Shown piece by piece: positions 2,386-40,010 of a stretch of DNA of 64,000 bases. A program made the position numbers and the translations under genes. Each line of letters starts with the position of its first letter. Positions within the stretch are counted from its first letter, which is position 1. The stretch comes from Thalia democratica (Eukaryota), in assembly GCA_965202585.1 (NCBI GenBank), contig OZ241830.1:69874001-69938000 (forward strand). Reading direction: 5' to 3'. The notes under the pieces were generated by a model. That model worked only from the letters and a program-made list of their open reading frames with translations. It was not told where the DNA came from and did no database searches.

Positions 2386-2404
2386 CTTATAACAGTACTA
2401 AGTC
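2386..2404 (+). other. Putative 19-nt non-coding 5' UTR exon followed by a 56-nt intron (2405-2460)
   Basis: ttttttcag|19 nt|GTAAGT ... atcag|ATG; identical layout in B (63430-63412, intron 63411-63356). Confidence 0.45.
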
Positions 2405-2460
2405 GTAAGTAAATTTGAACTTTGATCAAATTTCACCCAACCTGCGTCATCTAATATCAG

Positions 2461-2740
2461 ATGACAGCCTCTCAGCAGGCCGTCCAATTGTCAGGAGACC
2501 TTCCGGATTGTCAGAGACCACCGGAAAGTCAGGACACCTTTGATTGGAATAATTTTGACGACTGCTCGGTAGGCAGTAGTTCCCAGGGCTACTTCTCACC
2601 TGGGTACCAAAAAGGGGAAAACACCGGAAGCGAGACAGAGGGACAAGTTTCAAGTCAGGGGATGTCGAGTAGGTCAAGTCATACTGTGATAAAAGGAAAA
2701 TTTCCTAAAAATACTGACAACTCGAAACAAAGTAAAAGAG
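2461..2740 (+). CDS. Isl: Islet A coding exon 1 (Ser/Gly/Gln-rich N-terminal extension)
   Basis: ATG at 2461 with in-frame TAA at 2452; donor AGAG|GTGAAT, phase 1 matches exon 2; frame kept in copy B through a 15-nt indel. Confidence 0.8.
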
Positions 2741-14700: not shown

Positions 14701-17700
14701 CTTGCATGTTGGCGATACATTTCAAGCAATCTGCATGCCACTGATCTATTCTCAACACCTGAGTCTTATGACGTCATAACCAAATGTATTTCACAGAGAT
14801 GCACTGTTTAAGGTGGCTTTCTTTATGACACTTTTATCTTAAAATTACTGATTATCTATGATCTAATAATATTTGTGCTTAATAAACATTTTATATTAAT
14901 TACTGTAGTAGATTATAAACAGAAAAACTAAATATAAAACAAAAATAATAATTCAACTAAATACACTAAAAGTGTTTTCAATTGAGTAAATAAGCTTAAG
15001 GGTTACAAAATAGTTTTAAACTAGCTTGTGTAACTTTTAAATGTACATAAAACCTTTTATTGAACCGCAATAAATAAAACGCTTAAAATAATATATGGTA
15101 ACGAAATAATAATATATGGTTCTAATATCTGGTAACGAAATAACGTTCCGGTTACCGAGTCAAACACCGATCGGATACAGTTTATTGTTCCTGGTCAATA
15201 TATAATTAAATTAGATTTTAAAGTACCTTATTATTATAAAATTATATTTTTTTTCATCTAAACGTTTAACAAATATGTAAAGTTATTTTTTACGTATACA
15301 TATTTGTTTAATCTTACCGTATAGTATTAGGGAACGTATAATAACTTATAACGTATAATAACTTGTTGTATAATCGGCTTTGTTAGTATTTTTCTAATGT
15401 TTAAAAAAAAAGATAACTTTAGCTTTAAAGTATGGTATTAGCTTACATAACGACAAAAAACGCTAAAAAGATTTGGTCCTAGGACCTGGTGTACGAAGAA
15501 TTTCGGTTATCGAGTCGAAAGCTTGTTTTAATTAAAAAAGTTTCAGTTTATCAAATTAAAGTGTGTAAATACAACTTTGTTCTAAGTAGATAACTTGTAA
15601 AGTATACAAACTAGAAAAACCAATCACCGCTTTATAAATCACACACATTAAACCTTTTTAAAACTCATAGATCAAATTTTTGTACTTAAAATTAAGTTTA
15701 AGTTCAGAAAAATATTTCGTTGGTCTTTAAATGCAATTGTGAAAAGTTTACAAAGTAGACAAAATAACAAATATCATTTGAATTTTTCTAAAAATTAGTT
15801 AGTATTTAAAAATCATAAAAATAGTGATTAATAACGTTATTATGATAAATAGCATTAATATGCGTTACCATGACGATGGTTGCCATATCTTAAAGACGCT
15901 CCTCAGGGAAGTTGTTGCTATGGAAGCGTTGTGGCACAAAAATAATTATTCGACAATCATGTTGGTTTTTATATCGGTAGAAAAAAAGTCAATTCTTTTA
16001 ATTTTTTTAAAATGTGTTTTAAATTTCTGCGTATACTTAAAATATCAATGTATATCACAGACAGATTTATTATAGGTAAAAATTTCCTACATAAGTAATA
16101 TTATAAAATAGGCGGTGGGTTTAAAATAAAACAACTTAAAGACAGTTCTTTAACTAAAGACAACATAGTTTTATTAAGAATACGAAAAAAAAAAAACTTA
16201 AAGAGTTTAAAAGAAATCAAAAAAAAATTGAAGAAAAAGTTTCTTCAATTAAAAATATTCAAAAAGTTTAGTTGAGATCGCATCTCAAGTTACTTCTGCA
16301 TATATTTTTTGCATCTAAGTTTATATCATTAACAAAAAAATAGTTATGTGCTTTAGAATAGTTTATATTTTAAAGAGAAAACAAACCTACGGAAGTAGTT
16401 CTTTTATTTTCAATTGAATCGTATTAAAAAAAAAAATTGCTAAAAATATACATTCTGTTACGTCACAACGATTAAATAACCGAGACTGCTCTTGTTCCTT
16501 GTTTGCGCCGCAGGTTGAGAAGGGTTGCAATTAAATCTGTTTAAATATTTATGATGGCATCGATCAATGTGGAGCATCTGAGATGCTGAGTTTCTTTTTG
16601 GATTAGTGACAAGCCACGCTTGACCTATTCGCTTTTCTGAACCTTTCTTGCATGAGTTTGCAAACAAAAAGAGACATGTTATCAATTATTAACTTAAACT
16701 CATCACATGCAATCTGGCTATTCGGTTTGTTTTGAAAAAATTATCTGATAAGTGAAGTGTGTTGTGCATCTTTAACTCAAGTAACTTGTCAGCGAAAACT
16801 GCTTTCACTTAAGTTTTGATAAAAACAACTTTCCTTTCACAAGTTTGGTTTAAACTTTACTTGGTCTAATGTGATAAATTGTAGATAGTATTGTATATGG
16901 TTTGAAAAAATGAGTAACATTTTATTATAGACAAATTAATTTAATTCCTGTAAATTTTTCTCTTTTCGATAAAAAACTTGTATTTAGAAGGATACACTTA
17001 ATAAAATGTTATATATGTAGCTTGCTGAACTATACGTTTTTTTACAACTTTAGCTATTGAATTATTTACAATTCACAAGCATTGTACTCGGTTTGGTATT
17101 TATATAAGATTGATTATATGAGTCTGATGTTATATTAATTTATTTACATTGGTAGAAACGCATAAAAAATTAGGAAACCACGTCAGAAAGCTTTTGGGTA
17201 TTCACAGCAGTACAACAATTATTAAATTACTATAATAAACGAATTTAATTTTATCACTTGCATTTCCCATTGTAGACGATGACGTATTTTGCTGTATACT
17301 TGCGCTTATCAGCAAAATAACTGAAAAAAAAACAAAAGGCATAGCATTTCAAAAGTCGATGCTCCTTTTTTTCATTTTAAGTTTAATTTCGAAGTTAAGC
17401 AGTTTTTTTTATGTAGTTTATAAACTTTTTTTAATTGCATGAGTTTCGATAAGCTTTGTTGGTAATTTTATTTTGGTTCGAAGAGAAGGTTATTTATGCT
17501 TATTTTTCGAAAAGTTTTTTATAGCACAAACTGTAAAGTTTATACGTATGAATATGATTACTCTGAATATAGTTTCTACTTGATTTTTAGAAAGAAGCGT
17601 CCAACTTAAACGATGGAACAAAAGCTACAGACCAAAATGTCAACGGTCCAGGACAAACTTCTAACCAGTCCACAGACATCAACGTGGACCAATCAAATTA

Positions 17701-18766
17701 CAACCATCCACAGCAACCGGCCTGGAAGGCGCTGAGTGATTTCGCGTTGCAGAGCGAAATTGAAAAACCCCCTTTTCAGCAACTAGTAAATTTTGTTGTG
17801 ATATATTTTTAAATATTAGACCAATTAAAATAGTTTAAGTAAATAAAAATTGCTGAAGAAAAAGTTAAAGATCTGAGCATTGTAAAAAGGAGATCAAATA
17901 AACTTTATACAATATATATTTTGATCAAAACTTAGTTGACAAAAATTTTTGAAGATTAAAGTAGCAAATAAAATACTTTAACTGGCAAAAATGTCTGTGT
18001 TTTATTTTTAATATTTGTAACTGACTGTTTTATTATATGTGGTTAAAGTTTTCACTAAACAGTATTATCAGATAGTTAAAATAATTTTTTACTGAATTAA
18101 CTAGTTTTTTAACAGTTTATTTATTGCATAGTTAATAGAATTAAAGGAAAACTTTATTTTTTCGCGTCTTGTTAAACTAAAATTTATAAAAAATATTTAA
18201 GTAAAATAACAAAATGTTTCTAAAAATCCACGATTTTATTTTTTTATTGGTAAAACTAATCTTTATTTGAAATAAATGTTTTTCCATAGGGTGGTGAATT
18301 TAAGTTCGGTTTTATTACCAAAAGTATTTGACCAAAATATTTAAAAAATTTTATCAAATATATAAATTTATTAAATCAATTCAGTAAAAAGTTATGAAAA
18401 CCGTCAAAATTACCCGTTGTGTTTAAAATAAAAAGTATTTTATTAATTTTTTGACTGGTTTAGTTGTATTTCTTAGTTTTATAATTATTATATTTTCAAA
18501 AATACAAAAAAAAACTACTATGGTTATAAACCGTTAATTTTACAGGTTATAGGTTTATAAAAATGGCGTTAAACATGTTAATAATTGTCTAAATAAAATT
18601 TTAACACTTTCAGGTCAACAACTTCTCGGGTCAGACTCCCTCTTCGATTTCTGATTCTTCGGAAATTCACAGCATCCCCTCCGTATCCTCACACAGCTAC
18701 GATCTCTCCACATTCTCCTGCACCACTTCTCTCCACTACGATTCTTCACAAACCATTTGCAGCTAG
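2461..18766 (+). CDS. Isl: Islet-class LIM-homeobox gene, copy A; join(2461-2740,4405-4588,10507-10605,10968-11095,13203-13588,17591-17785,18614-18766), 474 aa
   Basis: Two LIM domains with intact Zn ligands, Islet-type homeodomain ([13 protein letters not shown]...[16 protein letters not shown]) and the Islet C-terminal motif [23 protein letters not shown]. All seven exons have GT..AG boundaries with compatible phases (1,2,2,1,0,0), total 1425 nt, and are mirrored in copy B. Confidence 0.93.
3167..3640. mobile_element. Degenerate MITE-like foldback element in Islet A intron 1
   Basis: Imperfect inverted ends (3167-3223 vs 3563-3640, e.g. gcacgaaaggacagcttcgcacgaag vs reverse complement gcttaaagggacactttagcacaaag) around two ~130-bp-period units carrying CTAACCCTTACCCT. 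Confidence 0.5.
4405..4588 (+). CDS. Isl: Islet A exon 2 (LIM1)
   Basis: CMGC..H..CLKCAAC..CKND LIM pattern; acceptor tttttag, donor CA|GTTTGT giving canonical DYFH-LFAPRC spacing. Confidence 0.92.
7078..7300 (+). promoter_or_regulatory. Intron-2 conserved element, promoter-like (copy A)
   Basis: X-box-like GTTGCTAGGCAAC 7155-7167, GGGGAGGAG 7181-7189, TATTAAAA 7191-7198, CpG-rich; about 90% identical in three copies. Confidence 0.6.
9620..9870. promoter_or_regulatory. Second intron-2 conserved element (also 27160-27430 and 55760-56010)
   Basis: GC-richer block with TGACGTCA and two CAGCTG E-boxes in A; a ~45-nt core (CATTACAACTTGGCAGCTGACCTCAACAGCTATTATGACGTCA) is invariant in all three copies. 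Confidence 0.55.
10507..10605 (+). CDS. Isl: Islet A exon 3 (LIM2, first half)
   Basis: [12 protein letters not shown]...YHVQCFR; tttcag acceptor, AG|GTTAGT donor. Confidence 0.92.
10968..11095 (+). CDS. Isl: Islet A exon 4 (LIM2, second half)
   Basis: [14 protein letters not shown]...YCIKDY resembles ISL1 C..C.RQLIPGDEF; aacag acceptor, G|GTAAGT donor. Confidence 0.92.
12385..12430. promoter_or_regulatory. Intron-4 composite element (also 26461-26510 and 53170-53215)
   Basis: TTCACACCTGACAGCTTATCT: overlapping T-box-like, E-box, TGACAG and GATA motifs; flanking core retained in the pseudogene. Confidence 0.45.
13203..13588 (+). CDS. Isl: Islet A exon 5 (homeodomain and Gln-rich tail)
   Basis: Islet homeodomain; ttgcag acceptor; donor CAG|GTTGGC (phase 0, matching exon 6). 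The 3' boundary is less certain than the 5'. Confidence 0.93.
15451..15517 (+). repeat. Short interspersed repeat R (other copies 28461-28530 +, 48174-48248 -, 50234-50300 -)
   Basis: Pattern AAAAA(A)CG..CT(C/A)AAAA..TTTGGTC....TGTA..AA.A..TTCGGTTATCGA(G/A)TCG; two copies sit at non-paralogous positions. Confidence 0.55.
17591..17785 (+). CDS. Isl: Islet A exon 6 (ends in the conserved [11 protein letters not shown]...FQQL motif)
   Basis: Not in the ORF track; 195-nt open frame between tttttag and CTA|GTAAAT; the FQQL|V intron position matches vertebrate ISL1. Confidence 0.9.
18614..18766 (+). CDS. Isl: Islet A exon 7 (Ser-rich C-terminus, [11 protein letters not shown]...QTICS*)
   Basis: ctttcag acceptor, 50 codons then TAG; same length and frame in copy B. 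Confidence 0.87.
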   Translation, partial: VNNFSGQTPSSISDSSEIHSIPSVSSHSYDLSTFSCTTSLHYDSSQTICS

Positions 18767-20479
18767 TTGTGACGTCATAATATGAAAGATAAGCGGTGCG
18801 GGCACTGCATTATTCTTTTGACTTGTTTACATTTTGGTACAATTTTATATACTTGATTGCTCTTTTTTTTAATTATAGCACTTTATTCGACAGGTTTTGT
18901 CGCTCTTTTAATAATAACTTAAACCAACTGATTAATTGTAATAAAAAGCTATAATTTAATCACATAAAACATGATACTTATTATTAAGCTAAATGTTTAA
19001 ACTTTATACCATACTCTTCCATTTGTATTATGATTTTAAAAATCATCATAAGGGTTGAATAAATGCGTAAAAGTTTAAACAAAAAGTTAACTTCTAAAAA
19101 TTATATATAATTTTATATGAAACTATTCACTTAGTACGCTTATGCAAATTATTTAAACAGTTAATTTCATTTACACTTGTGTACATTAACTTTAGCTAAT
19201 GTTTGAAATATCTTGTTAAAGCAAAAATCAATTAAACTTATTATTAAAAATAAATTTTTACAACTTAAAAATCTAAATTTTGACAAACTCCAAAGCTAGA
19301 AATCTTAATGATATCTTGTTTAATAGCTGTTTTAATTTAACATAACACCTAAAGCTTGCTGTAAAAAAAGGACTAGTTTTGTTTATTGTGTTAGAAAATA
19401 AACTATCAATTTTAAAAGTTGTATTTTGATATCTTTATTTCATTATACTTTACTTTTTTTTTTATCAAAGGGCTTAAAAGACACTTCAAAAATACAGTGG
19501 AATTTAAACCATAGCAGAATTTAAAATCTAAAAGCAAAAGTTGTACATCTCTTTTTTTTTCTTTTCTTTTTAGCTATACCACTGTTCTGAAATTATTTAT
19601 ATAATACATACTTTTGTTTTAATATTGAATTTCTCTTTAAAACTTATAAATTTAATTTAAAGTACTAGTTCTTTTAACTTTACTATACAACTACTTATTA
19701 AAAACGTAAGTTAAAGTGTAGTCATAGGTCAACACTCTCTTTGCAAAATCTTTAATTGAAAATAATAAAGTGAGTTTTTGTATTAGAAGGCTGCAGATAA
19801 ACATAAGTTCATTTCTTCAAACTTTTTATTTGAAAAGTGAGTGCTGGTAAAAACTAAAAAAAAAACATACATTTTAATACTTTTTCAAAAATTCCACGTA
19901 TAATTCTTTAATCTTTATTGACCTGACACCCAACCTTTAATTAAGTTACATCACATCACTTACAGTATTCTTTTAGATGTTACTTTCGGTACACAGTGCT
20001 AAATTAGTAAAAATGCTGTCAACTAAATGCTTGTTGTCGCAATTTAAAATAACTCTCGCATCAAACTCAAAGCATTGACTTTAACGTAATCTTTTGGTAC
20101 TTTTCATTTATAAGTTACTCTACAATCAGCTTCAATATAGTTTTACTACTTTAGAACATTTAAAGAATTTTTAATTTTTGCAAACCTTGATGTAGTAAAT
20201 TTAAAATTAACTCCAAAAAAGTTAAACAATTTTTTTGTAACTTATGACAAATAAAATAAACATAATTAAAAGTTAAAAAATAAAAAAAATATAAGTTTAA
20301 TTTTTTATGTACAAAAAAATATGACTATTTTAAACCATTTTAACACTTAAAAACTTAAAATCTGCAATAAACTACTTAATAAATAAGTATATCAACATCC
20401 TCCACTATAAAATTTTTTCAAGAAAACCTTAAAAGTTATTATAAAACTTTCAAAGGTTACCGAAATGATTTATCGTTCC

Positions 20480-20620
20480 GATTATTTTTACTCAAGCGAT
20501 AATTGAATGATACATTATTATAAAGATTCTCATCTAGCGCACAGGTGCATTGTGAAGGAACTAGTGACATCCAAATAATTGATAACGTGTGATCACTGGA
20601 GCAGAAATAATAATATTTTA
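20480..20620. promoter_or_regulatory. 3'-flanking conserved element X (also 25650-25790 and 45130-45260)
   Basis: Core TGCACCTGTG(T/C)GCTAGAT found downstream of all three Islet copies in gene-matched orientation. Confidence 0.5.
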
Positions 20621-22574
20621 TTCTTTTACCGTTACATTTTGATTGTAATATAAACAAACAAATCGTACAGACTCTGTGTTGCAGCTGTTTAGTATGAAAC
20701 TTAAAGAACAGTTTATCTGCTTATTTTTCATAAAGAAAATTGTTAGTCTGCATTAATTCTAAGGAAATTTATTAAGTGTATAGTAGAGGGAAATTAGAAA
20801 ATTTTTAAATTGAATTAAATGTACTAAAGAAGTTTTTTCAAATATAATCAGGTTGACTATCAACTTGTTAGTAGTTTTTTGGCATATTGTTTGCTAGAAG
20901 CTTACAAAGTAATATTTCCATGGAGTTATATAACAACAAGCTAACATTTATATAATAAACTATATTTTTATATTAACATTTACAAAAAAGTTAATAAGCA
21001 TAAACCGTAAAGTCTTATGAATTTATAATAACCAGAACCATTTAATAAAATAATTTTATTTTACAAAAAATTTTCCCAATTTTTTCTGCAAGTTAGTTAA
21101 ATTATCATATTTTAATTTTGATTGAAAAATAGACTTTAAGAGTACTTATAATAAAAATTTATAAAGTTTATATTTTTTATATTACTTGTGCTTAAGTCGG
21201 TTAGCTGCTTTTGTACCTTGACAACTAAGTAAAGTAAATCTAAGTATGTTACCATTAACACCACAAAAAAACTAATTAAATTTAATTAACTATTTGTTAA
21301 ACTTAATATCCCTAAAGTTCTCAAAATATCAAAAAAAAGTTAAAAGTGTAAAAAAAAAACAAACAATATCTACTCACATAGATCTAACAAGACAACCACA
21401 AAACATTGGTAATAAAAAAACTAAATTTTCAAAAGAAGGTAGTCTTCAAAATACAATAAAATGTTTGTACCTTACCCGTAGATTTATTTTGTATTAGCTA
21501 ACAGGTTTTAATGAAAGTGGAAGCTAAAACGTTGCAAAGTAGGTTAACTGACATATTTTAACAACTGTTTTAATATTAAAAACATTAGAGTGAGGTGTTT
21601 TTTTTTTGTTTTTATCATTGTCATAAAGTTAGCTCGTTAACTACAATTGCTCAATTCCTGGGTTTCTTCCACTTACATTTTTACTTTCAGCTTTTCGTGA
21701 CTACCGTTCGTCAGAAGCAAGGACGGAAAAAATACAGAGTTAAGATAAGCAGTGAATGTTAAAATTAATTATTGATACATTTACATGCGCGGACCTGAAT
21801 TTTAGTTTAGCAATCAAAATAGAAATTAATGATTTTCTTGGACTTGACAGAAAGTCTAAATACAAAGTGACATGTCTGCAAACGCACATTTGATAAACAG
21901 GTTTAAAAAAACGTTATTTACGACATGGCACAGCTGCACTATGAATAAGACAATTGTATTTTTATAAACATTAAAATGTTTATAAGTTTGTGATTGATAT
22001 CACAATCAGATGTTTAAGTTATTTAGACTAAAAATAGCTTTGAATAGATTAAATGATTAGTGTTTCAAATAGGTGTTTTAACTAGCCAAGTTTCTTCTGA
22101 ATTAAAACATCTTTAATTTACTTGATTTATTTAAATTTGAGAATAAGTTTTTAAATGCTTTGTTTTACAAAATCCCACTAACTAATAACTGTTACAAATA
22201 TTTGTTTTAAGAATCATTCTTAGTAACAAAAAAAAATTTTTTTTTGTTGAAATTTTTTAAATTTGTTTACACAACCTAAGTTAAAATAAAAATAAAACTT
22301 TGTTTTATCTGAAAAAAGCTTCTTAGAAAGTAGTTTTGTTCATTATGTTTGTTCATTTTGACAAACAAGCTTTATAAATAGTTATGTTGGTTCTAATCAA
22401 AAATATTAATACATAAACTAAAAATTCTACCTAATCTTTTATTATAAAGATTTTTAGAGTTTCTTATGGATTTATTTTTACTATATAAAAGTTACAAACT
22501 GCAAAAAAACCATTCAGTGAAACTTTGCATTTCGAAAACAATTTACATTACGAAACGACGAACCTTTCAACTAC

Positions 22575-22915: not shown

Positions 22916-23059
22916 AGCATTTTTAAATTACAACTACTTAGGTTAGAGGTAGTGGTTATATTAATGCAGACTTCAGATGTTTGATAGTAAATAAATGTTC
23001 GTATTCATACATGTAACAAAGTGTAAAAAAAAAAAATACAAACTTGAAATCTAAAAAAG

Positions 23060-23330
23060 CAAACCAGTATGTTTGATGTTTCAAAAGTAAAAAAAAATCC
23101 ATTAAAGCTTGATCAAGCGAGCAAAATTTCATGATGGCAGCCGCAAGTGTAATTTCGCATGGCAACGAGCGTCGCGGTTACTAAGCAACATATCACCAAG
23201 CAACATATCGACTCGAAATGATTAAGTATCATTATGTATTCTGTTTGCTTTTTACGGATTGATAATTACTGAGTCTAATGCAAAATGTGGTTTATATGGC
23301 TTCGTTCGCTGTCGTATGAAAAGTAAATTT
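23060..23330 (+). repeat. Module Z, copy 1 (X-box-like cluster)
   Basis: GCATGGCAAC, GTTACTAAGCAAC (23177-23189) and a 15-bp-period AAGCAACATATC repeat; direct copies at 37612-37830 and 39795-40010. Confidence 0.85.
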
Positions 23331-26300
23331 TCTTTAAACACATGGGAAAATAGAGTAGTCAAGAAAAAAAAAATTGAACGGAAAAGTAAGTTGACATAAA
23401 ACTAAACTGTTTATTTTAAAAACAAAATTTAATTTAATTAACTGATTTAATTACTTAAAAACGTTTCAATAACTTTGTTACTTAATTTTTTTATTTAAAA
23501 AGGGTTAAGCTTAAGTTTTTAGTCGAAAGTAGCAATAATCGATATAACTTTATTATCCATAGGCGAACACTTGCTTTTATAGTAGATTGCAAATAAAATT
23601 TATCAGGCACAATTTCATGTAAGGGTGCCACCATGGCAGGCATGTGTTAGAAGCTTATTACTATAGAAACTGTTTAAACTCGATACTATGAAAGCAATGA
23701 CAAATAGGCAAATTAGAAGACACGGTGAAACTTCAAATTTTAAGGCAAGTAGTTTTTAAACCAAAAAATAGATGTTAAAAGCTTATCGTAAAAAGCGACA
23801 CAAGTATAATTAAATGTCTGATACCATGTTGGCCATCCGGACATTAAAATTGTTTTATGAAAAATTACGCTAACTTTTTTGTGTGTAATTTGTAGTTGCA
23901 ATGTTTAAGAATTTTGTGCGGAAGCAATTTGCGAATTTTTGGTGAGCAAAAAAAATGAAATTTTGTCTAACTTTAGGTATTTTCAAATGAAACTTTCAGA
24001 TACAAACTATAGTTACACTTGACAGATTTATACGACTGTTTGCATTTATTACGATCATTCAATATAGATTTTTTTTTTAATTAGCTGTAAACGACATGAA
24101 AATACTAAGTATGCTGGAAACAATAATTTAAATTTTTCATTAATTGTCACAACAAACATTCTACTGCCTAGCTCACTTTATGAAATAATATTTTTGTTAC
24201 TTTGAATTTGATTGTAAATTAATTCATGGGATTTACTTAATATATGTAAAGTCACTAAGCAACAAAACTTTCTATTCCGTATTTAAACATTTTCGAACTT
24301 AAACAGTTAAAACCCGTTCTTTTCAGTTAGCTTTTAAACTTCCAAAAATTGTTTCATAAATAAACAAAATAAAATTGATTTATGCTTTATTTATCGCAAA
24401 TCCTAAAGCAACTTACTCCTTTAAATAAGGTAAACATCCTTTAAAATTATAAATGTAAATTCGAAGGAATACAATGCTATCAATCATTAAAAGGATTTAA
24501 AAAAAGATTTGAATAGGGATAAAAAAATAAACAAGTTTGAAGAAGATTTTAAGATTTTAAGAAAACAAATTTTATTGGGGACTGATTTTATCAGTTTAAG
24601 ATTTACTTTATATATCACCATGGCTCATATGTAAACTTTACTAAATTTACTACAAAGTTGATGTTGTCGGCTCCCTAAAGTTTAAATTTCAAGCACTTTA
24701 TTTTTAAATTCAAAATCTGTTTAACCGTATATGTTATAAAAATTTAAAATTAAAATAATCATTGGAGCTTTTTAAGAACACGTTCTGATTTTAGTTTTAA
24801 CTTATCTTTACAAAAAAATATTACTAAAAACTGTTTTTAAAATAATTAGTTTTTAAATCATTTGAAAAAAAAAGTATTTTTATCATACTCAATAGGGTTT
24901 CGTTAAAAAGAATTATATCAGTAACTAATTTCGATGTTCTAATGAAAATTTCTCATGTGTTTGATGTTGCCTGCAGCTTGTAACAACCAAACCAGAAAAT
25001 TAACAAAAAACATTGCTTTTGTTGTGTGTTAGTAAATAAGATGAACACGTATTTTTTTTGTTTATACTTTAAAAGGTTTTGTATTGTTAGTTTTTAAATC
25101 AATCAAAAAAATATTTTTTCATGTTTTATCGATTAAAACAAACTTAGCTTAAGTGCTATAGAATACATAGTTTTATTAACTTCATTTTAATATAAGTAAT
25201 TTAATTAAGACTGAATTTCGAACATAATGAAATAATGTTACCTTCAGTGGTATTGTGTCATTTGTTTTAGTGAAAAAAGTAAAAAGTAAACAACGTTTTA
25301 GTTATGTATGTAAAAAAAAAAATTTACATATCAAACTATTTTTAAACTATTTTGTTTTGAAAACTTCTAATAACAACTTTTCAAAGTATTTTTGTTATTG
25401 TCAACCTAAGAATATCGACAATACATACCTGTTTTCAATTGTATTATGCTACTCAGTTTTTAAACTTAATTCAAAAATACTACAAGTACATAGTTTGAAA
25501 TAGGTAAAATACTAAGCTTATCCAATCAAAATAAAAATGCAAATTTCCTAAACCTTTTTTGTACTTGTAATACAAACAGCTGGATCATTAAGTCGAAATA
25601 TTTATTTATATCACAGTCAAAGTGTGACGAAAATCTTAAATAATTATTCTTTAAACTCCAGTGATCACGTGTAATTAATCATTCTGAGCTCACTAATTAT
25701 GTTGTCTCACAGTGCACCTGTGTGCTAGATTGGAGTCTTTATTGTAATGTATCATTTGATTACCTGTCAATAGGAAATAATTGTAAAAATATTCAATATC
25801 AGCATCATTATAAAATTTTATAATTGTTTCAAATATAATCAACATAATAAGACACTTCATTCCAAAAAAATTTCCGTTTTATATTCTTGGTGACTTATAT
25901 TTACTATATACAGACTGGAATATTCAAAGCATAACCTACAATAAGTGCCACAAAAAGTTTATCAATTTTGTTTTGGTATCTTTTTACATAACTTATTGAT
26001 TCACCTCAACATAAAGACGGTAACATTCTTGATTTGTTATTGTACAGGTTAGGATAGAGTAGAAGAACTACTTCCTTTGTTCGAATCCCTTTTGTATGAG
26101 AATTTTCAATAACAAAGTCTTAGATGTAAAAAACATAGGCAAAAATAAATTAAGTGCCTAAAACAGTTTATAATAAAAAGAAAAGGTTCAGTACAACTTA
26201 ATTTAACATTTTTGATGTTAAAAATGGCGTCTGGCGATAAAAGCAAAATCAACTTAAACTCACACAAATTTTCAACACAAAAACTTTATAAAACTAAAAA

Positions 26301-29300
26301 TTAGTTCATTTAAGCATTTTTATACATTCTGTAATAGTTTTTATATATATATTTGTAGACAAAACTATTTATGACTATTTATATAATGTTTAACAAGCAA
26401 AAACCGGAAAACTTAACCGTTTGTATGAGTCACTTTATAAAACATTCAACTTTAGTATTATGAATATTTAAAGATAAGCTGTCAGCTGAGAACAACTTTT
26501 ATTTGATCACACTTTATGTAAGTTGCATTATCAAGAATCGATTAATTTCAGCTCTTTAGTGTATTTGTGATTATTTATTTTTTTTGATACAACTTTAGTT
26601 AAACTTTTAGTATTTACACAAGTTGAAATTTTATATTCTGACAGAATGAAATAAAGAAAAATTTTGGTCTATAAATTTTTATCTTTAGATAGCAAGCATA
26701 TCTTTAAAACTGATATCACTTTTATTTAACGTCTTTAATAGTTGTATCAATAAGTTCAACTTAATGTATATATATTTCAAATTTGTACTATAATTAAATT
26801 AGCATTGTATACAGCGTTTTCTGAATGACTTAATGAATTTTTTATTAACTTTGTAAAACTTTTGTTGTAAATATTTAGCTTTTTACATTTTTTAACAAAT
26901 ATTTTTGATAATTTATAGCAAAGCCTAGTATTTTGATATAGAATTTTGCTTTCAACTTTCATGTTAGTGGATTTTGATTTTAAAAATAAGTTTTTGCTTA
27001 AATTCTATTTCTTAAATATACTTTTGGATTCTTTAGATGTTTTTGTTGTTAACAACGAGTTGAAAAACTAATTCCTTTGGATTAAAGCTAAAAGTACACC
27101 CAGTTGAACTCATACAAACGACACGTGTCTGCTCAAATACTGTAATATGACTTAACAACACGTCATAATGCGCCGCTCAAAGCTTCCTGACAATGAGCTC
27201 CCGTAGGACTTTCTGCTGCATCAAATGGCGACGTTTTTACTGCTCCCGTGACGTTTCTTCGCTTTTTATATTTCTTTGTGTCTGCTTGCATGCTTGTGTT
27301 CTTTTGTTTGTATTTAAAAGTCAAAGTGTCGCAGTCCAGATTGAAGGCACGAAATCAATCATACTTATGTCACCTGAACTGCATTACAACTTGGCAGCTG
27401 ACCTCAACAGCTATTATGACGTCACAGCAAGACTTGAACTCAAGATGTTTTTTACAATGTTTTTTTTTTTTTGAATAATTAATCAAAATTTCTTTAATTC
27501 TTAAATGAAAAACAAAATGTTTAGAAATAAAGTTGATTTTTTTTGCCAAGGTTTGATCTTTTAAATAAGTAAATTCGTTACAAAATTATATAAACTTTAA
27601 AATAAAAATTCAAAACTTTGCAACATCAATCTGTTTAAACTTTTGGTTAATTTAAGCTATGAAAAACTAAAAATTAAAACATGTAGTGCTTCAGTTCACT
27701 AAAAATTAAAAACATGTTGAATCAATGGCAAGTACAGAGAATCACTTTGCAGTCGATAATATATGTCGGCTGTCGCGACACAAGCAGACATAAACCGCTA
27801 CTTTTTGGGTTTTCTGTTGTTATTATAACCATGTACCCCTGCAATTTTTACCTTGTTGTCTTGTTTGTTTTCTGTTGTTAAGTAAAATAAAAGATTTGAG
27901 TTAATCCTTTAATAACTTTCGTTTGAAAACTGTTTTTGTTTGCGAAAGACATTGTAACTTTTATTGTAACTTTTGTTTATTAGCAATTTTTTTTTATATT
28001 ACTAAAAGATTAATAGTCACGGATGTCAGAATTGCTCACTAAGACATTTTTTATTTTAACGTTTATAAACGTCGTTTTTTATAAATAATTTGTTATGTTC
28101 TTTTAACTTCGTTATATTTTTATGGAATATTAGTTTCACTTGCTATTTCCACTTAGTTGAGTATCGAATAACATAAAATCAATCAAGTAAAACACAATTT
28201 CGATTAAAAATTAGAACAGTGATATATTAACAATTAAAAGAGAGTGTATAGAGAGATTTGAGTCAATACCTTCCAGCAACCTATGTTAGCGGCAAAACTT
28301 ACTTCTAGTAATTAGAATGAAATATTATTTTTCTTGGTTATTATAAAGAAGTTTTTTTAAACAATTTTTATTTCCTAAAAGATTTATATAATTTAAAGTT
28401 TGATTAATTAGTTCTCATTTTATATTAAAAACATTTTACAACATATAACTGTTTATCGTACGATAAAAAAGCGCTCAAAAAGTTTGGTCTAACAACCGCT
28501 GTAAAAAAGAAACATTCGGTTATCGAATCGTATATCATATATGCACACAAAATATGTCTACATAGTAAATCATATAATATTGTTTGTCTAGTCAGAAATA
28601 TTGTTTTAAATACTGTTTTTGCATAAAGTTATTAACACTTTATTATTGTTTATTGACATGGTTTTTATAATACAATATAAAACTCGTTTATTATGCCTAG
28701 TTTATATAAAATAGCATTTAGTACTTTTCAGTATAGTTATTTATATATATGTTTAAATTTAATTTGGGTTATAGTGTGGGTGTAAAGTACACTATAGTTA
28801 TATTATTTTGTTAATTTCGGTAACCAATTTTCTTGGTAGGTTAGACTAATGTTATATATTTCAAATAAAGGTTAGTCTTATATACAACTATTTTTTTATA
28901 AATATTGCAAAAAGTACCACTTATTAAAAGTATCAAGCATTAAATTTTAAAAAATAATTTAAGACCAAACTTAAATAGATATAAAAACTAAAAAAAAAGT
29001 TTTAAGAAAGTTTGAATAACATATAAAATTGTTCTCGTATCTACTTGTTTTTTGTATATTGTTTACGCCATAGGAAAGCTAGCATTTTCGAAAGCGTCTC
29101 AAGTTTGAACTTACAACCTCGAACAAAAATGACGTCCTTTCGGACGTTTATTGAATTTCCGACAGAATTGCAGCTTACTGAGATACAAAATCGTTTTAAA
29201 CTAATTATTAAAATAAAATAGAGTGAGAAGAATTGATGTTTTTTCAAAAGTTTTAATTAAAAAATTCTATTATTTAAAAACTATTGATAATTATTTTTGA

Positions 29301-29989
29301 AATTGTTTAAATTGTAAAGAAATTGTTTATCACCAACCTTAAATACTCTTTATGGTTTTTCTATTTCGATGGATTATAGTTGCAATTTAATCGATAAATA
29401 CGAAAAGTACACTAAATTAAGTGATCACTTAATAAGTATTTAGTAAAAAACAGAAAACATCGACTAGTTTGTTTTGTTATTGCAACGTTAAACTATATTA
29501 TTTTTAATGATTATTTCTAGCACAGCCTGTAATCTATGTTGAAAAAAGTTGTGTTTTAATAGTTTACTACGATGTTTTGGCATCATAACAACAGCGACAA
29601 CTTAAAGGAGAAAATGTAACAACAATCTATAAAAAAAATTTCTAACATAACAAGTTGACTAAGTAAGCTACACACAAACTAATCGTCAATATGTTGATAT
29701 TACAAGCGGTATAAATCAAACAAGAGGTTAAGTGATAGAATAAAAGTTCTTCTGTAGTTTGTTAAGTTCACCATTAGTGTCGACGAGCCGTCGTCGGCGT
29801 TGATTATGACGTCATAAGGTGAGCCACATCGGTGTCGCTTAGTAGTAAGACAACTTGTAATGTTAACTTGTTATTAATTTTATGTAACTTATTATATATT
29901 TATAACTTGTTTCCGATTTTTAAAAATATAACAACCGTCTATCATTGCATTATACATACTATGTAAGCTTAAAAAAGCTTTTTTAGTCT

Positions 29990-30212
29990 TTCAAAGGTCG
30001 GCAAGGGCAATTGAGACAGAAACAAGCCTCAATTCGACGTCGCAAGTTGCTTGTCGGCCGACGTCAGGTTCGTGTGTGAGATCGGAACCTTTTAATTGCT
30101 CCTCCCCAATTTGCAGCGAGGTTGCCTAGCAACAACCGGCATTTATTTGTGATTGACACATTCCACTGAGCACACTCAAGTGTCCTGTTTTGAAGTTACG
30201 TCACAGTAGCGG
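29990..30212 (-). promoter_or_regulatory. Intron-2 conserved element (pseudogene copy C)
   Basis: Matches A and B closely although flanking AT-rich sequence is only ~65-70% alike; X-box-like motif 30121-30133 intact. Confidence 0.6.
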
Positions 30213-32923
30213 TTTGAGCTAGTCTTATAGAATAGTAATCACTTTTACTTTGAAAATAGAAATTTATTTTCTATAAAATTTAACGTCATGCTCAGGCGAG
30301 CGTGAATGTAATAAGTGACATAAAAAAGTTGAAAAGAGTTTTAAAAAATAAAATTAAAACAAGTGTTAAAACAAGTTTGGGGTTTCAAGCTGCTAATAAG
30401 AGATATTAGACTCAATTAAAAAAATACATATATGTAAATTATCCTTTTTTACAAAAAAGGTACGATAAAAAAAAATTTTGAGTAAAATTTATAGAAATGT
30501 TTATATGGGCGGCCAAAAATCAGATAGAAGTTGAATGAAGTTATTTTTGTTTAAAGTTGTGAAATATTCATGATGCTGCCGACAGAAGAACGCAATAAAA
30601 GAGACACTTTTCACACAACCGTTACATTGGAAAAAAGTGTGCGTATTGAGAGAATAAAACATGACTGTAAAATGTGAATTTTACTTCGCAACTATTTTGT
30701 TGCACGAGTATGTCATTTATAATGATATAAATCTGTTTTTAGAAGTAATGGTCGGTTAAACCTACTTTGTAAAATATTTATACTTAAAAGTATAAACGAC
30801 ATTTTTATGCGTACATTTAAAATGTATGATTAAGTGTAGTTGAGCAATTTAATTGCTTGGGTTTTTGTTTTAATCTAAGCAATTTTTTGAACTGAATAAA
30901 AACCGATAAAACAATCAGTTTCATTTTAATATATTTATTATGATTAAAAACTCTGATTCATACGAGAGTTTTAGCCAAGTATAAATTGATTTTAAACCGT
31001 TGATCAGTTTAGCTAATTATTAAAATCAACTTTTATTTTGATATACTTGAAAAATAATGCCGTCTTGTGAAAAAAAGTTTTGATTGCTAATAAAAGTTTT
31101 CCTGTATTTATAATAAAAAAAATAATTAAAGCTTAGTATAAAATTTAAATTTAACTTTAAATTTTTTACTTAACTAGAAAAAGCAGCAGGTTATGATTAT
31201 AACTGGCAATTTAAGTGGCAGTCAGCAATTAAAACTGATGCTGTCAATTGTCGACAATTGAACATGTAAAGCATTTCGAAATCTATTTTTAAATTGTTTT
31301 TAAACTTTGCTGTTAGGTTGTTTCTTGTCGAAAATTAAATGGGAGCTGAAAACATTTTTCCACAAGGTTTTTTTGTCAATGAATGCTTAAATGTTTTTAT
31401 AAATTATGTGTATCAAAAGGAGTTGAATCATGTTTATTGCTAAAGCAATCGTTTAAGCATTTTAACATTTTATAAATTGCACGAATGTTGTAGCTTTGAA
31501 TAACCTTGCTTATGTATAAAAGATTTTTTTTTAATGCTAAACAAGTGACGGTTTTCAAAACCTCAAAGAGCTTTAAAACCTACATCATTTGAATAATTAA
31601 TGCAGCAAAGTAATCAGGTAAACAATTTTGCGATTATACAGTTAAAAGTGCTACTTCTTACATTGCATGTTGAATTATTTATTTATATTTGTAATAAAAC
31701 ACGAAAGGCAAATTTGTGTAAAATTCTTAATTTAATTATTGATATTAAACTTTTGCTTAGCCTAATCACTTTGTCCAGCTAGATTTTAGCACAAGTATTT
31801 TAACTTATTTGTTAAAGTAAATAAAATTAGATGTTTCACCTACTAATAAAAAGTGTTTTTTTTGATAAATTTTATCAAACTATTTTTTTAATAAGTTAGA
31901 GTACACTATTAAACTATTTTCGAAACTAGCAATTTTCAATAGACATGCAGTTTGAAAAACTATTAAAAAACATTTGACAATTGTACGTCTAAAAAATTTT
32001 GTTGAGCATTTGTTTTGGAATTTTTGAGTTAAAAAATATATTTTTTGAAAAGTTTTTTTTTAATTGTTTAATAACAATATAAATTAATTTAAATTTTTCT
32101 TATGTCATTTGTTTACATGTTTTTCCGGATCTTTGTCCAAAAAATAAAACACACGAAAAAGCTTAACTGATGTTATATCAACACGCTTTAAAATTATTCA
32201 CTTCCCATGTGAGTTAATCGAACTGACAGTTTGTTAGGTCAACAAGCGAAATCAACTTGACAAATGGAAAAATTTAAATTACTTTTGTTTTTAAAATATT
32301 AATTTAAAAGCCTAAACCAAAAAGGTGCTTTAAATCAACAGTGTCAGAATTAAAAGTTCAAATTTGTTTTTTCGCTAAATATTCTTTAACTGATAATGTG
32401 TCATTAGCAACTTTAAATAATCGTCTTTTAAGAAGTTTTAGTTTTTCAAAACCTCGCTTTCTATCGCTTAAAAAATGGTAAAAATTTTATTAGTCAAAAG
32501 CGTTTTATTTGTTCATTTTTAAGACAGTAGAAGAAATATCGTATTTTTTGCAACAATTCTGTTATACTTATTTATTATTATTTACTATCTGAACATTAAG
32601 TTCTCATTATCTTGGACACTGGAAATAAAAACCGTTTAAATTTAATATGTAAAGTGTGAAAAATTTAATTTTATACTTTCTTTAAAGTTGGAGAAGTTAC
32701 TATATCCAGATTGTTTATAAAATTTTGTAAATTTTAAAGTATATCATATTTTACATAAGCTGTTTTCACTTTCAAACCGATTTAAATTTTTTTTTAACTT
32801 AAATATATTTTATGACATATTAATACTATAGTTCTTGAACATAAACATTATTTGTTTATTTATAAGTTTTAATTTGTTACAAACACAAACTTTAAAACTA
32901 GTATGTTTAAATAGTTAATGAAC

Positions 32924-33098
32924 TGAAGTAGTCGTTTTTGAAGTAAGGTTTATAGTCCCTAATAAAGCATATCTGCCAGGTTGCGACCACAAGCGGCGCA
33001 CTTGAGACATTTTGAATGCCAGTCAACCCCTTGTGAGGTGCTGATGTAAGAGACGTGAATCAAGTGACCACAAGTCATAGAAGTCCTCGTACCAAAAT
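32924..33098 (-). pseudogene. Isl: Islet C LIM1 exon relic
   Basis: Reads [43 protein letters not shown], then an 8-nt deletion shifts the frame to TAG. First Cys is Ser, last Cys is Phe, and a further 1-nt deletion occurs near the donor. Confidence 0.92.
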
Positions 33099-36000
33099 CT
33101 AAATATTGTTTCGTTATTTACATTACTATATTTTATTTGATTTATTTTAGGTAATATATTAAATCAATAAACTGTGTATGTATTGAAATGTAACAACTTT
33201 TATATTACAGTAGAATTAAAACTAATTTTGGCTGATTAATTAGACTTATATTGCTCAGGTAGTTATAATATTTTATAAATCTATATGCCGGTTAATTAGC
33301 TATTAAAAAGTTAATAAATTTTTTACGTAACACCTTCTTTATTTCCTTATTGACATTTATTTTGATTAAGTTAAACTGAATACCAAGATACAAAAGCAGA
33401 GATTAATTTTAAACTTGTAAATATTATTTTAACATATATTTCACAACTAAATTATCTTTTTATATCATTATCTATCTTATTACAGTTTTCTAAAATTCAA
33501 CTTTTAATTGATTTAATTATTTAGTTTATTTTTATAGCCAATTTTTTCAAATTTAGCCAAAATTGCCAAAAATTTGGAAAATTTGTTTAATTTTTATGTG
33601 CCACACTGTACTTAGTTTAATATAAATAATATCTAAAAGAATCTAAAATACATATTAACTTCAGTGTACAGTACAATTTTGCCACTCCTGCGCAAATCAA
33701 TAAAGTCAAAAGTTAACTTTTCAAGTCAGGTGGCTCATCGATGCATAAAATGCTTCAATAAAACGTGAGAACTTATCAACTTCAACCTTAAAGGTAAATT
33801 TCACTGCTCATGCTCAGCTGTTAGGGTCTTATTACACATTGTTTTTATCGTTTGATTCGAAACAACCTAACCTGACCACCTTTTCTATTGTTACGTCACC
33901 ACATATTTCAACGCTTGGTTGAGTTAAAGCCGTCATTTTAACCTGTATTTACACAACAATTCTGTTGGGTGTAGTGTTTCGCCCGTAGCCCTTTTATGTA
34001 TGGGATTTTCACACACATATCTGTTATAGCGCAAAACAGGTTTGAAGTAAAACTTGGATCTTTGTTTGTTAAAACACCAATCATGAGCATTTAAATAAAT
34101 AAACAAGAAATGTTTTATAATAAAGGACAAAAAAAAGACTTTTTAGTTTTCAACATCAACTTAAAATAAACTATGACTGTTGGTCCTTCACTATAGTTAA
34201 AAATTACAAAAATCTACAAATTGTTTAGAAAAACTCTAACTTCTTTAAACGAACCAACTTTAATTTAAGTTTTTTAGTGTAATAGATGAACATTTTTTCA
34301 GTTTTCTTTTATACTTCTTGTCTGGTGCATTTCTAACAGAGATCTGAACGCAGCAGTAACATTTTAAGAATGCAATTATTTTATTCTACCATGTATCGCT
34401 CAATTATAGATATATGTCACTGCACTAATTTTCATAATGAGAAACAGTAAAAAAAATTAAAAACAAGTTTGAGTATAAAATTATTTTTTGGTTTGTTTAA
34501 TTTTTGTGCATCAGTGTTAAACAGTTTTAGTGTTTCGATAATAAAATTGTTGCTTATGTGGTCGTGAAAGCATCACTCAATAAAAAACTTTTTAACTCGT
34601 TTATTTTAGTGGAGTTTAAGAACCCTAGAGCTCAGTTTTCATACTTTTTTAAAAAGACTATAAAATATGTTGTATTTATATATCAGGTTTCCAAATTACA
34701 CTCGTTGCTTTGCTAATAAACATACAAGCCGTTTTGTTAAGATAAAATTGTTTGTGTTTTCATTGACTACATTTTAACATAATTGTTTCACTAAACTTTT
34801 AAGGGACACTATTATAGTAGATTTTGTTATGACAAAAACATGTTTAGAAACAAAAACGTGAATCATGTAACGGAAACAAGATGATCTAGACTTAAATGGT
34901 GAACGTCAGCTTTTCCTAATTCGTTCGAAATCTGAATGACATAAAGATAAGCAATGAATGGAAAATATGTTCGTAAATTTTTGTCGATGCTTTTTTACGG
35001 ATTAAATAGGAAATTGTATTTGAAATACCGTAAAAAGTAATGGCTAATTTATGGTGTGCACAAAAAAAAGTTTAAATTATAAATAAGCATAAGCTACCTA
35101 CAAAAAGAGACATTGATAGTTTATTTATTTCGTGCTCATAAAAAAGAACTTGTTGCTATGAGAAGAGACAAATCTGCAAATAAAAGTTTAATTAACATAT
35201 TTCGTAATAAATGACTTCAGGCTTGATGAAAAATTTACGATGAATAAACAATTTGTACTTTAAATATAGTAAACATATAAAACAAGTAGATTTTTTTGAG
35301 GTCGTGTATATTTCCCTTTGACGTGACAGCTAAAACGTTTGGCTTTTTCTTTTGTGATCATATAAACAAAACAAATAGTTTTCGTCTTCGTGTTGGTGTT
35401 CAATATATTAACCATATGCTTCAGTTGACAGTAAAGTTGTCGATAATATGTTTTCTACTTAACTAAACTGTTAGATTTCAATCACGGTCAGATAAGTTTT
35501 TATTTTAACTATTTATTCAAATTCAATTAAATGCCACAGATAACTCCGAATACAAGAGTATTTTATTTATTGTTTGAAAATTACTTTATTTTGCTGTCAG
35601 CGCATAGGGCTTGTGTGAAGGCGAGTAAAAACAAATAGACTAATATGTTATAGAAATTTGAAAAGTGATAGATAACAAAAAAGATTATAACAAATATTTT
35701 TAGTGATATTATGCTTTTTTATAATTCACGCGACGTAAGACTCTTTACGGTTTTAGTTTTTGTTTATTTAAGTTCTTATGTCTTTAAACATAACCAATGG
35801 ACTAAGAACAACTTAAGTCTAAATTATTTTTTCAATTGTGAATCTAGACGAGAGAACTTTTAATTTCTTTTTTTCTACACTTTTTAAAACTTAATTTGGT
35901 AAAACCATATAAAGTGATAAAAATAAAAGAGTTTTCTTTCAAAAATTTTTAAAACAATATGTAAAAAAAGTTTTAGCATTATGAAGTAAACATTTTTCAG

Positions 36001-36860: not shown

Positions 36861-37611
36861 ATCAGAAAGAGCCAAGTTAATGTTTTATGGTTAGTGGTTG
36901 TACTTTACCTACCGTTTTTTACACTTTTGTACTTGTTGTATTTTGTTTGTGACCTTAATGAAATACTAAAGGTTTAGAAATATTAAAAACTTACAAATAC
37001 ATACTGTTTTGTAATTTAATGTTTATTCATAAGTGTTTTAGCATATACTATAAAATAAATTAATTAAAGAATACGATAAAGTTTTAAAATCGAATGTTAA
37101 CTGGTTTTAAGCAAAAAAAAGAAAGATAATCCAAAAAATAATATTGAATATTTGTTCTTAACAACTTACTTTAAAATATTTGAGTTAACCGAGTGTCAGT
37201 CAAAAAAAATATTTAAAACTAAAAAACTTACAAGTTTTGCAGTTACTGCTTCGACAACTTTTTATATTATTTTAATTAGAAATTTTATAACATTTTTTAA
37301 GGGTTACAGTTTTAAATTTCATCGAATACATCTTTAAGTATCTTTGTTGATTACCTGTTGTTAGTGCTGTTATTTTTTTCTATTTATAAACATATATCAA
37401 AATTATTTTGCTATTATAAAAGTTTTCAAATTAAGACTATAACAAAATAAAAACTTTATATTAAACTGGTTAAGTTTTAAAAAAATGTTTACAAAATATA
37501 ATTATTTTAAAAGGTACTTTAGTGCAGGCGTCAAGGGTTTAAAATATCGTTTATAAATTTTTGCTACATGTAACAAATTTAAACAAAACGATGCAAACAT
37601 AATGTTGAAAT

Positions 37612-37830
37612 TAGCAAACCGGCATGATAGATGTTGGAAACTAAAAATAAATTCCATTAAAGCTTTATCAGAAGAACAAAATTTCAAAGTTACAGCCGCA
37701 AGTGTAATTTTGCATGGCAACGAGCATCGCGGTTACTAGGCAACATATCACCAAGCAACATATCGACTCAAATGTAACTAAGAGCATTAATGTATTCTGT
37801 TTGCTTTTTGCGGATTCATAATTACTGAAC
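37612..37830 (+). repeat. Module Z, copy 2
   Basis: GTTACTAGGCAAC at 37732-37744; core about 90% identical to copy 1. Confidence 0.85.
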
Positions 37831-37935
37831 CTACTAAAAATAATCTGCAAAAGTTTATTTAAAGAAAAGTTCCTAACACTAAATAAATTAACTGCATAAC
37901 TTAAGTGTGGAGTTTGAACTCTTAAAAAAAAATTG

Positions 37936-38880: not shown

Positions 38881-39794
38881 TCAAAACTATTTTTTTAACT
38901 TCTGCATTTAAAAAGTATTTTATACTAAATAGGTCATGGTGAGTTTTCGAAGTATTTAAATTAACCAAAAGTATATGCTGTTTTAAATGTTTACCATAAA
39001 CATAAGCTTCTGCATTTACCTTAAGCTACATATTTTAATGTCGTTGATCACAAACACAAAAGCGGCATAAACATAAAATTGTTATTCATACTAACTTGTT
39101 TAAAGTAAAAAATAATGTACTAGTTTCTTATTACACTTAAACTTTTTGTTGTATGCTCAAGCCTGCTTTGGTTAGAAATTGACAGTTGAAATATTATAGT
39201 TATACAAATGATCATTTTAACTAATCTGAGTTTTAATAACTAAAAAAAAAGTAAAAAGATAAAATTATTTATTTAACTAATCTAATTTATAAAAAATAAA
39301 ATAGGTAGGTTAAATATGCGTAAGATAAGTTTTAGATCGTAAAAACAAAAAGTCTTTTAAATGTAGCCAATAATAAATTTTGAATGTTTGTATCAATTAG
39401 ATTAGTAAAAGGTTCTTACTTATTTAAGTACACAAATTTTCAATTAGAACAATAACTAAAGAAACGATTGTGGTACTATTCATCTATTTCTATTACAATA
39501 TTATTAGCTACTTAAGTATTGACTAACGAAAAAAAACTTTTGACAGTTCTAAGAAAGGATGCTTTGTTTATTTTTCTTAAATTAAGTTCTTAAACTAGCT
39601 AATGTTTATGCTATTTTTAGATATATATGTATATATATGTACAAGTAAGTTCAATTGTAAAGTTATTTAGATAAGGTGTTAGGCTTTTCGACATAAAATT
39701 TACAACAATATTACTTTGTTTATAAAGATTAATGAAAAAGATGCAAGCAAAAGCTTTAATAAAAAAAAACATAAATGTAGTAAGGTTTTATTAC

Positions 39795-40010
39795 CCCAAC
39801 ATCAAGAGAATAAAATTTCATAGTGACAGCCGAAAGTGTAACTTTGCATGGCGACGAGCATCGCGGTTACTAAGCAACATATCACCAAGCAGCATATCGA
39901 TTAGAATTTATTTAACTGCATTTATGTATTGTTTGCTTTTTGCGGATTAATATTCTCAGTGTTTAATGCAAATTGTTGTAAATTATATTTCGTTTGCTGT
40001 CTTGAAAAAG
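39795..40010 (+). repeat. Module Z, copy 3
   Basis: GTTACTAAGCAAC at 39866-39878. Confidence 0.85.

Follow-up and report, generated by a model that had tools for sequence, protein, structure and literature searches.

Relic C, an exon-depleted copy of an Islet-class LIM-homeobox gene, was an ordinary duplicated pseudogene, though a well-preserved one, in a rapidly turning over Islet array of Thalia democratica. It was located on the minus strand at positions 25594-34458 of the window (the whole stretch of DNA analysed, 64,000 nucleotides, positions 69,874,001 to 69,938,000 of contig OZ241830.1), between two live Islet genes, A on the plus strand and B on the minus strand. C is probably an unprocessed, decaying Islet paralogue left by birth-and-death in a tandem and inverted LIM-homeobox array, and no selection on C itself is needed to explain it. 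An initial annotation had proposed that the dead gene was kept as a shared or shadow enhancer array. An exon-depleted pseudogene with truly conserved blocks was indeed present, but its persistence through an enhancer role, though not refuted, was not supported: nothing specific to C in the sequence comparisons made here spoke for the idea.

C matched A and B (BLAST within the window) in collinear blocks only, both genes alike: 25594-25763, 26427-26582, 26749-26899, 27090-27834, 28943-29189, 29777-29823, 29985-30220, 30547-30711, 31592-32421 and 32887-33117. Elements of intron 2, intron 4 and the 3' region thus followed one another in the order given by the initial annotation, which was also right about the best block (29985-30220, 90.7% identical to A and 90.7% to B, against an estimate of about 90%) and about the exons. 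Only a frameshifted LIM1 exon remained, read by tblastn in two frames, with two deletions in the alignment, two altered zinc-ligand Cys codons (TGT>TCT and TGC>TTC) and a lost start codon. No trace of LIM2a, LIM2b or the homeobox was found in C by blastn or tblastn (E<=10); the sites of exons 3-4 and of the homeobox and last exons (6-7) were reduced to the two deletion scars listed below. With its LIM1 lesions, an intron 2 collinear with that of A and B, and exons 3-7 absent, C was an unprocessed pseudogene. The neighbouring intron, annotated as 65-70% identical, was in fact 48-58% identical to B between the blocks, at or barely above the level of shuffled sequence (48-52%), and the blocks of C therefore stand out against a saturated background. 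That the weaker blocks were merely alignable neutral DNA was ruled out, inter-block sequence being near the shuffled level for every pair of unit types tested, sister types II and III included (types are given in the next section). The features of C, from its 5' to its 3' end, were as follows (L034, L025 and C2 are other units of the array).

33118-34458, minus: 5' flank, once the upstream/promoter region of the gene; paired with the 5' end of L034 as its twin (89% identical to L034 392-1998; flank identity 90.6%)
32925-33117, minus: LIM1 pseudo-exon (deletions of 8 bp and 1 bp, loss of two zinc-ligand Cys codons and of the start codon, ATG>ACG; from alignments and two-frame tblastn)
32166-32414, minus: conserved intron-2 block, with the junction of the L034-twinned and C2-twinned parts
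31592-31825, minus: weakly conserved intron-2 block (67-80% to other types)
30485-30728, minus: conserved intron-2 block
29985-30220, minus: best block, 236 bp (GC 48%, CpG observed/expected 0.94; 17 copies, all in the array on this contig)
30172-30194, no strand: gene-conversion tract in the best block (six derived states common to C and relic L025, absent from the twins of both)
29653-29827, minus: conserved block with a perfect palindromic cAMP response element (CRE) TGACGTCA at 29807-29814
28943-29189, minus: weakly conserved intron-2 block (67-69%)
28301-28500, no strand: very high-copy repeat fragment in the relic intron (word depth about 72,000; loose ends 28450-28497)
27089-27885, minus: largest conserved intron-2 block, with cores 27348-27426 and about 27720-27834 (sub-blocks also in the Islet array of contig C4)
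27348-27426, motifs of the first core: CRE 27417-27424, E-boxes 27395-27400 and 27371-27376, TGATTGAT 27354-27361
26583-26748, minus: deletion scar, 166 bp vs. 2058 bp with LIM2 exons 3-4 in B
26427-26582, minus: intron-4 element, the quarter still left of a 1.3-kb region that the live types conserve
25764-26426, minus: deletion scar, 663 bp vs. about 7.9 kb (homeobox, last exons and 3' region) in B
25594-25763, minus: 3' element (73-74% to A 20500-20658 and B 45078-45251)

Apart from the repeat fragment at 28301-28500, a second one was present within C at 32501-32700 (word depth 4,100, with a few hundred elsewhere). An open frame on the strand opposite to Islet crossed the main intron-2 core in C (27193-27474, plus) and in A (9579-9779, minus); the two peptides were similar, and indels among the other copies argue against coding. 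A family of three direct repeats, 63-86% identical, was found in the spacer around C (23026-23284, 37581-37840 and 39715-39972).

The Islet array and the history of C

Eighteen Islet units were present on the contig of the window (C6), six of them relics belonging to three lineages. Genome searches found 11 homeobox exons on C6 and 13 on C4, with a similar number of LIM1 exons; the expansion covered C6:69.82-70.25 Mb and C4:36.17-36.71 Mb, with 73-82% amino-acid identity to A, and a further LIM1 match was located on a small contig, C899. Ten kb around each array unit were compared, and the units were sorted by the identity of their flanks into six types:

Type I: A, B, L030, L031, L034
Type II: L022, L028, L029, L032, L033, L035
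Type III (relic): C and L026 (referred to as C2)
Type IV (relic): L021, L024
Type V (relic): L023, L025
Type VI: L027

Type III units kept at most a dead LIM1, type IV units a LIM2a remnant and type V units no exon. C differed from all other units by 8% or more. In L022, a unit otherwise of type II, neither the 10-kb locus nor the genome search yielded a homeobox match. L028 (C6:69981036-69991035) and L029 (C6:70025624-70035623), in opposite orientation, were 100% identical over 8 kb, one of them with a 100-N gap; the duplication is either palindromic and very recent or a product of the assembly.

The lineage of C, type III, was sister to the live type II and was much older than the duplication that produced A and B. 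The body of C (26058-32319) was 87% identical to C2 throughout, neutral intron included, and in C2 too the exons were not found (blastn and tblastn); the two deletions that removed exons 3-7 must therefore predate the last round of segmental duplication. The 5' end of C (32626-34458) had a different twin, being 89% identical to the 5' end of L034 (C6:70210325-70220324). A third copy of the type III 5' region was located at C6:70239511. L034 carried the LIM1 lesions of C as well, which dates the death of the exon to before that split. Upstream of C2, too, there was a type III LIM1 pseudo-exon, indicating that the arrangement seen in C is ancestral and that L034 is the chimera.

The different twins of the 5' end and the body of C, with the junction inside a conserved block, are also what a collapsed or chimeric join of paralogous units in the assembly would produce. 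Such an artefact is scarcely credible: independent contigs from the source sample, in pieces of 1.1-1.3 kb, matched C with 0 differences across 27395-29742 and 31714-32263, and the upstream pseudo-exon of C2 places the chimera in L034. Assembly error was ruled out by these exact matches. Sequence about 90% identical to C across 27101-33100 was recovered, moreover, from a second organism (run X3) and from a marine metagenome (run X4). The contigs of the second organism were about 90% identical along blocks and flanks alike and may correspond to C or to C2; a close relative therefore carries a type III relic too.

L034 carried its dead type III LIM1 with an additional lost acceptor, and few units of the array had LIM2 and homeobox exons as well preserved as those of L034 (2 private changes at 469 invariant sites). 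This unit either works without LIM1 or has exons kept by conversion.

A and B, the units with which C was compared, had open LIM and homeobox reading frames. In A the LIM1 exon lay within open reading frame (ORF) 4287-4607, the LIM2 pieces in ORFs 10508-10723 and 11011-11211, and the homeobox exon at 13223-13609; in B, LIM1 was at 61193-61411, LIM2 at 54901-55107 and the homeobox exon at 51987-52436. Pfam LIM matched LIM1 of A and B (E about 2e-14 each) and the LIM2a ORF of A, and Pfam Homeodomain matched both genes (E 4e-16 in A, 6e-16 in B). The solved structure closest to the homeodomain was ISL-1 (E 3.5e-24; next protein 1.9e-16). A and B were both Islet-class LIM-homeobox genes by these features, and C retained only its LIM1 remnant. 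A and B were the arms of a young inverted duplication, with 88% identity across about 17 kb, introns included (window 1828-18837 vs. 63999-46804), with identity falling and becoming patchy beyond about 17 kb and 48.7 kb. The region was AT-rich (about 26% GC). An ORF upstream of LIM1 was conserved in both A (2461-2751, plus) and B (62978-63394, minus), had no Pfam match, and may be an additional 5' exon or a separate gene that was duplicated along with them. Between C and B, a kelch-like gene was present as an intact single-exon ORF of 336 amino acids (41004-42014, minus), with Kelch repeats (Kelch_2, E 7e-11; Kelch_1, E 4e-10).

The best block and gene conversion

The block of C most similar to A and B proved to be similar in every unit that carries it. 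All 17 copies found by genome search were located within 420 kb of C6 and were 83-95% identical in all pairs, whatever the relatedness of the units; the twins A and B (88.6%) and C and C2 (91.9%) were no exception. There were no type-specific fixed differences among the 17 copies, 56 of 136 variant states were shared, mostly across types, and 202 of 561 informative site pairs (36%) failed the four-gamete test. C had a single private change in the block. It shared with the type V relic L025, 266 kb away, six derived states within 23 columns (30172-30194), three of which were non-CpG transversions; all six were absent from the twins of both copies, and their clustering was significant (P=3.5e-5). 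Judged from these shared states, the 23-bp tract is ectopic gene conversion. Decay of CpG sites did not explain the star-like pattern of the block, since by eye most CpGs were kept in each copy and most private changes were off CpG.

Given this conversion and the plateau of about 90% shared by all copies, the 90% figure is no measure of constraint on C. Recent conversion had been named in the initial annotation as an observation that would undo the enhancer proposal, and for the best block it was found, both as the family-wide plateau and as the C-L025 tract. Within C, concerted evolution by ectopic gene conversion was detected in the best block only; in the rest of C, a search for tracts received from the neighbours A and B found none. 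The exons of all units (LIM1, LIM2a, LIM2b and homeobox) also showed star-like identities across types: the homeobox exon of A was 98.2% identical to that of L034 and 97.9% to that of the type II unit L033, but 96.9% to that of its own twin B. These identities suggest concerted evolution of the exons too.

The following sites were recognised in the best block:

30121-30133: X-box-like palindrome
30196-30203, 30060-30066 and 30035-30042: CRE-like sites
30053-30062: GTCGGCCGAC palindrome
30088-30099: CAATTA

Composition and sites are consistent with a genuine regulatory module of the live genes, and just as much with GC-biased conversion. The block might even be a functional unit of its own (a CpG-island-like promoter, an insulator or a protein-binding platform) and the reason why each relic was kept, its uniformity being due to strong selection together with homogenisation. 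This appears quite improbable. The block was found in all six relics, even in those stripped of nearly everything else; these relics, however, were found by searching with the best block, and its presence in them is partly ascertainment. Its sharp common boundaries, its GC and CpG content in a region of 26% GC, its dense palindromic sites and its central stretch of about 100 bp, almost invariant, would suit such a unit, yet high GC is also expected from GC-biased conversion, and the twins differed in the block about as much as in their flanks. Furthermore, the block was not found in L035, a unit otherwise complete and apparently intact, nor by genome search in the C4 array. Sub-blocks of 27090-27834 were found in the C4 array and are therefore older. 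A structured non-coding RNA was rejected, as there was no Rfam match at E<=1 across window 25000-34500 and none of the 50 predicted pairs of the best block showed a compensatory change.

Substitution rates and decay of the conserved blocks

C and C2 are two independent read-outs of the fate of the relic after gene death. Raw identity between them was 90.1-91.0% in the blocks and 87.9-88.2% in the flanks. The ratios of blocks to flanks were compared with those of the live pairs and of the older relics; two comparisons involving the very young pair L032-L033 were exceptional (odds ratio 1.15, outgroup-invariant ratio 1.39) and are left out of the ranges for live pairs. The mismatch odds ratio was 0.76 for C-C2, 0.75-0.99 for live pairs, 0.94 for type IV and 1.02 for type V; the rate ratio at polarised sites was 0.70, 0.62-0.81, 0.87 and 1.02, respectively; and at outgroup-invariant sites it was 0.65 for C-C2, 0.56-0.70 for live pairs and 0.68 for type IV. 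The dead LIM1 exon, used as a negative control, was 92.7% identical between C and L034 (flanks 90.6-92.0%); here the raw odds ratio for mismatches was 0.78 (n=193, not significant).

Equal rates in elements and flanks, named in the initial annotation as a refutation, were not what was seen: the elements of C changed more slowly than its flanks, at about 0.6 of the flank rate for deeply conserved positions, as the enhancer proposal would have it, but the same slowdown was seen in C2, in live pairs (0.56-0.81) and in the dead exon. Being the same in live copies, twin relic and dead exon, a slowdown of a quarter to 40% cannot be read as selection on C. Real constraint had another scale at this locus, live exons showing 0.004-0.024 changes per site at invariant sites. 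Of the polarised changes of C, 24 of 55 fell on positions where all aligned copies of the other types agree, and about 48 bp inside the main block (27282-27381) were missing from C2. At first count C appeared better preserved than C2 (17 vs. 29 changes at invariant sites); the difference disappeared (25 vs. 24) when the blocks were defined from C2, and was an effect of ascertainment. Complementary decay of C and C2, element by element, was not significant in a runs test (p=0.08).

The relics as a class lose conserved blocks. Measured on the A unit, 52% of what the three live types conserve was retained in type III, 28% in type IV and 7% in type V. A 1.3-kb stretch of intron 4 (A 11554-12889), which is conserved among live types I, II and VI and is the longest conserved non-coding stretch of the gene, was mostly lost from C: the intron-4 element recorded in the initial annotation does survive, at 26427-26582, but it amounts to only about a quarter of the region (24% left, 76% lost).

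Several observations weigh against neutral decay of C. The neutral baseline for formerly conserved, GC-richer sequence is one dead exon of 193 bp. Deeply conserved positions changed in C and C2 at 0.031-0.038 per site vs. about 0.06 in the flanks (Poisson P 0.0002-0.01), a rate equal to that of live copies. On the stem of type III the blocks accumulated 46 changes in 674 sites, vs. 41 for the live sister type II (four-type comparison), while LIM1 took 12 substitutions on the same stem (about 9 nonsynonymous, codons read by eye) and 2 indels, live types showing 0-1. About 30 extra block changes would be estimated if neutral decay had begun at the death of LIM1, an estimate that assumes the stem lengths and exons that were not homogenised; the star-like identities show that exons clearly were homogenised, and the stem-length argument for constraint is therefore suggestive only. 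All transcription-factor-like motif cores of the best block and of core 27348-27426 were intact in C. Finally, no second conversion tract was found in C outside the best block, so that conservation at second hand was demonstrated for that block only.

The same observations bear on the possibility that some intronic modules of C, the best block and core 27348-27426 first, still act as shared or shadow enhancers for A, B or the kelch-like gene, under weak purifying selection. This is conceivable but unlikely. Outgroup-invariant positions changing at about 0.6 of the flank rate, as in live copies, would agree with it, but the ratio was no different in the dead exon or, once ascertainment was removed, in C2. 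The intact motif cores and a type III block stem no longer than that of live type II, in spite of the decay of LIM1, also point in this direction, as does an intron 2 that retained its full length despite the deletion of 9 kb around it; against this, three quarters of the conserved intron-4 region are gone from C, its changes fall on otherwise invariant positions, and the older relics lose their blocks (ratios 0.87 and 1.02, with the low retention given above). Conversion accounts for the identity of the best block. A broader version, in which exon-less units throughout the array would carry the 236-bp CpG-island-like module (X-box, CRE and homeodomain sites) and the older cores as additional enhancers or platforms for neighbouring Islet genes, weakly selected and repaired by conversion, is doubtful.

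Birth-and-death of an unprocessed paralogue remains the explanation that we favour. Before the last segmental duplication LIM1 was already dead and two deletions had stripped exons 3-7 from the copy, leaving the whole of intron 2 with the regulatory blocks of its live period, a piece of intron 4 and the 3' block. The blocks would still be recognisable for three reasons: they were probably under strong constraint through most of the history of the lineage; the time since death, roughly 0.12 substitutions per site, may have been too short for their erasure; and the most similar islands, above all the best block, may have been overwritten by conversion from other units. Conversion would in this way hand selection on the live copies to C at second hand.

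Comparison with other systems

Unprocessed pseudogenes in birth-and-death arrays kept similar by ectopic conversion are well known from the globin, MHC and olfactory-receptor clusters. The array of C resembles them in its retained introns, exon lesions, deletions and relics of differing age among live paralogues, and in a conversion tract shared with a non-sister copy (C-L025). It differs in that its best-homogenised segment is a non-coding intronic module, not only exons, and in that the family, unlike those of globin-type clusters, encodes a developmental transcription factor. To our knowledge, Islet is single-copy in most invertebrates.

Shadow enhancers, a concept from Drosophila, are redundant enhancers with overlapping activity and are defined by that activity. 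As with these, duplicated copies of regulatory modules lie within reach of related genes in the array of C; unlike them, the duplicates of C stem from duplication of whole units, appear to be decaying and are known here from their sequence.

A literature search found no description of this Islet array, and a single conceptual precedent (Dong et al. 2009, PMC2831330). In that work, exonic and non-coding remnants outlive their host gene in genomic regulatory blocks after the teleost whole-genome duplication. Like the remnants described there, the pieces of C are recognisable beside a surviving developmental gene after the loss of a copy. Unlike those remnants, defined by cross-species conservation after the loss, C is known from rates within one genome, which are inseparable from those of a dead exon.

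If the blocks of C were shown to be enhancers, they would be a clear example of regulatory DNA that has survived the loss of its gene in a tandem array, and the same locus provides natural controls: the live units, C2 as the twin relic, and the two lineages of older relics. In a young array of redundant genes, conserved non-coding islands can look selected though their similarity is partly second-hand, through conversion, and an identity of 90% tells little about any one copy. More unusual than relic C is the array to which it belongs, in which Islet-type homeobox exons number at least 24, spread over two contigs.

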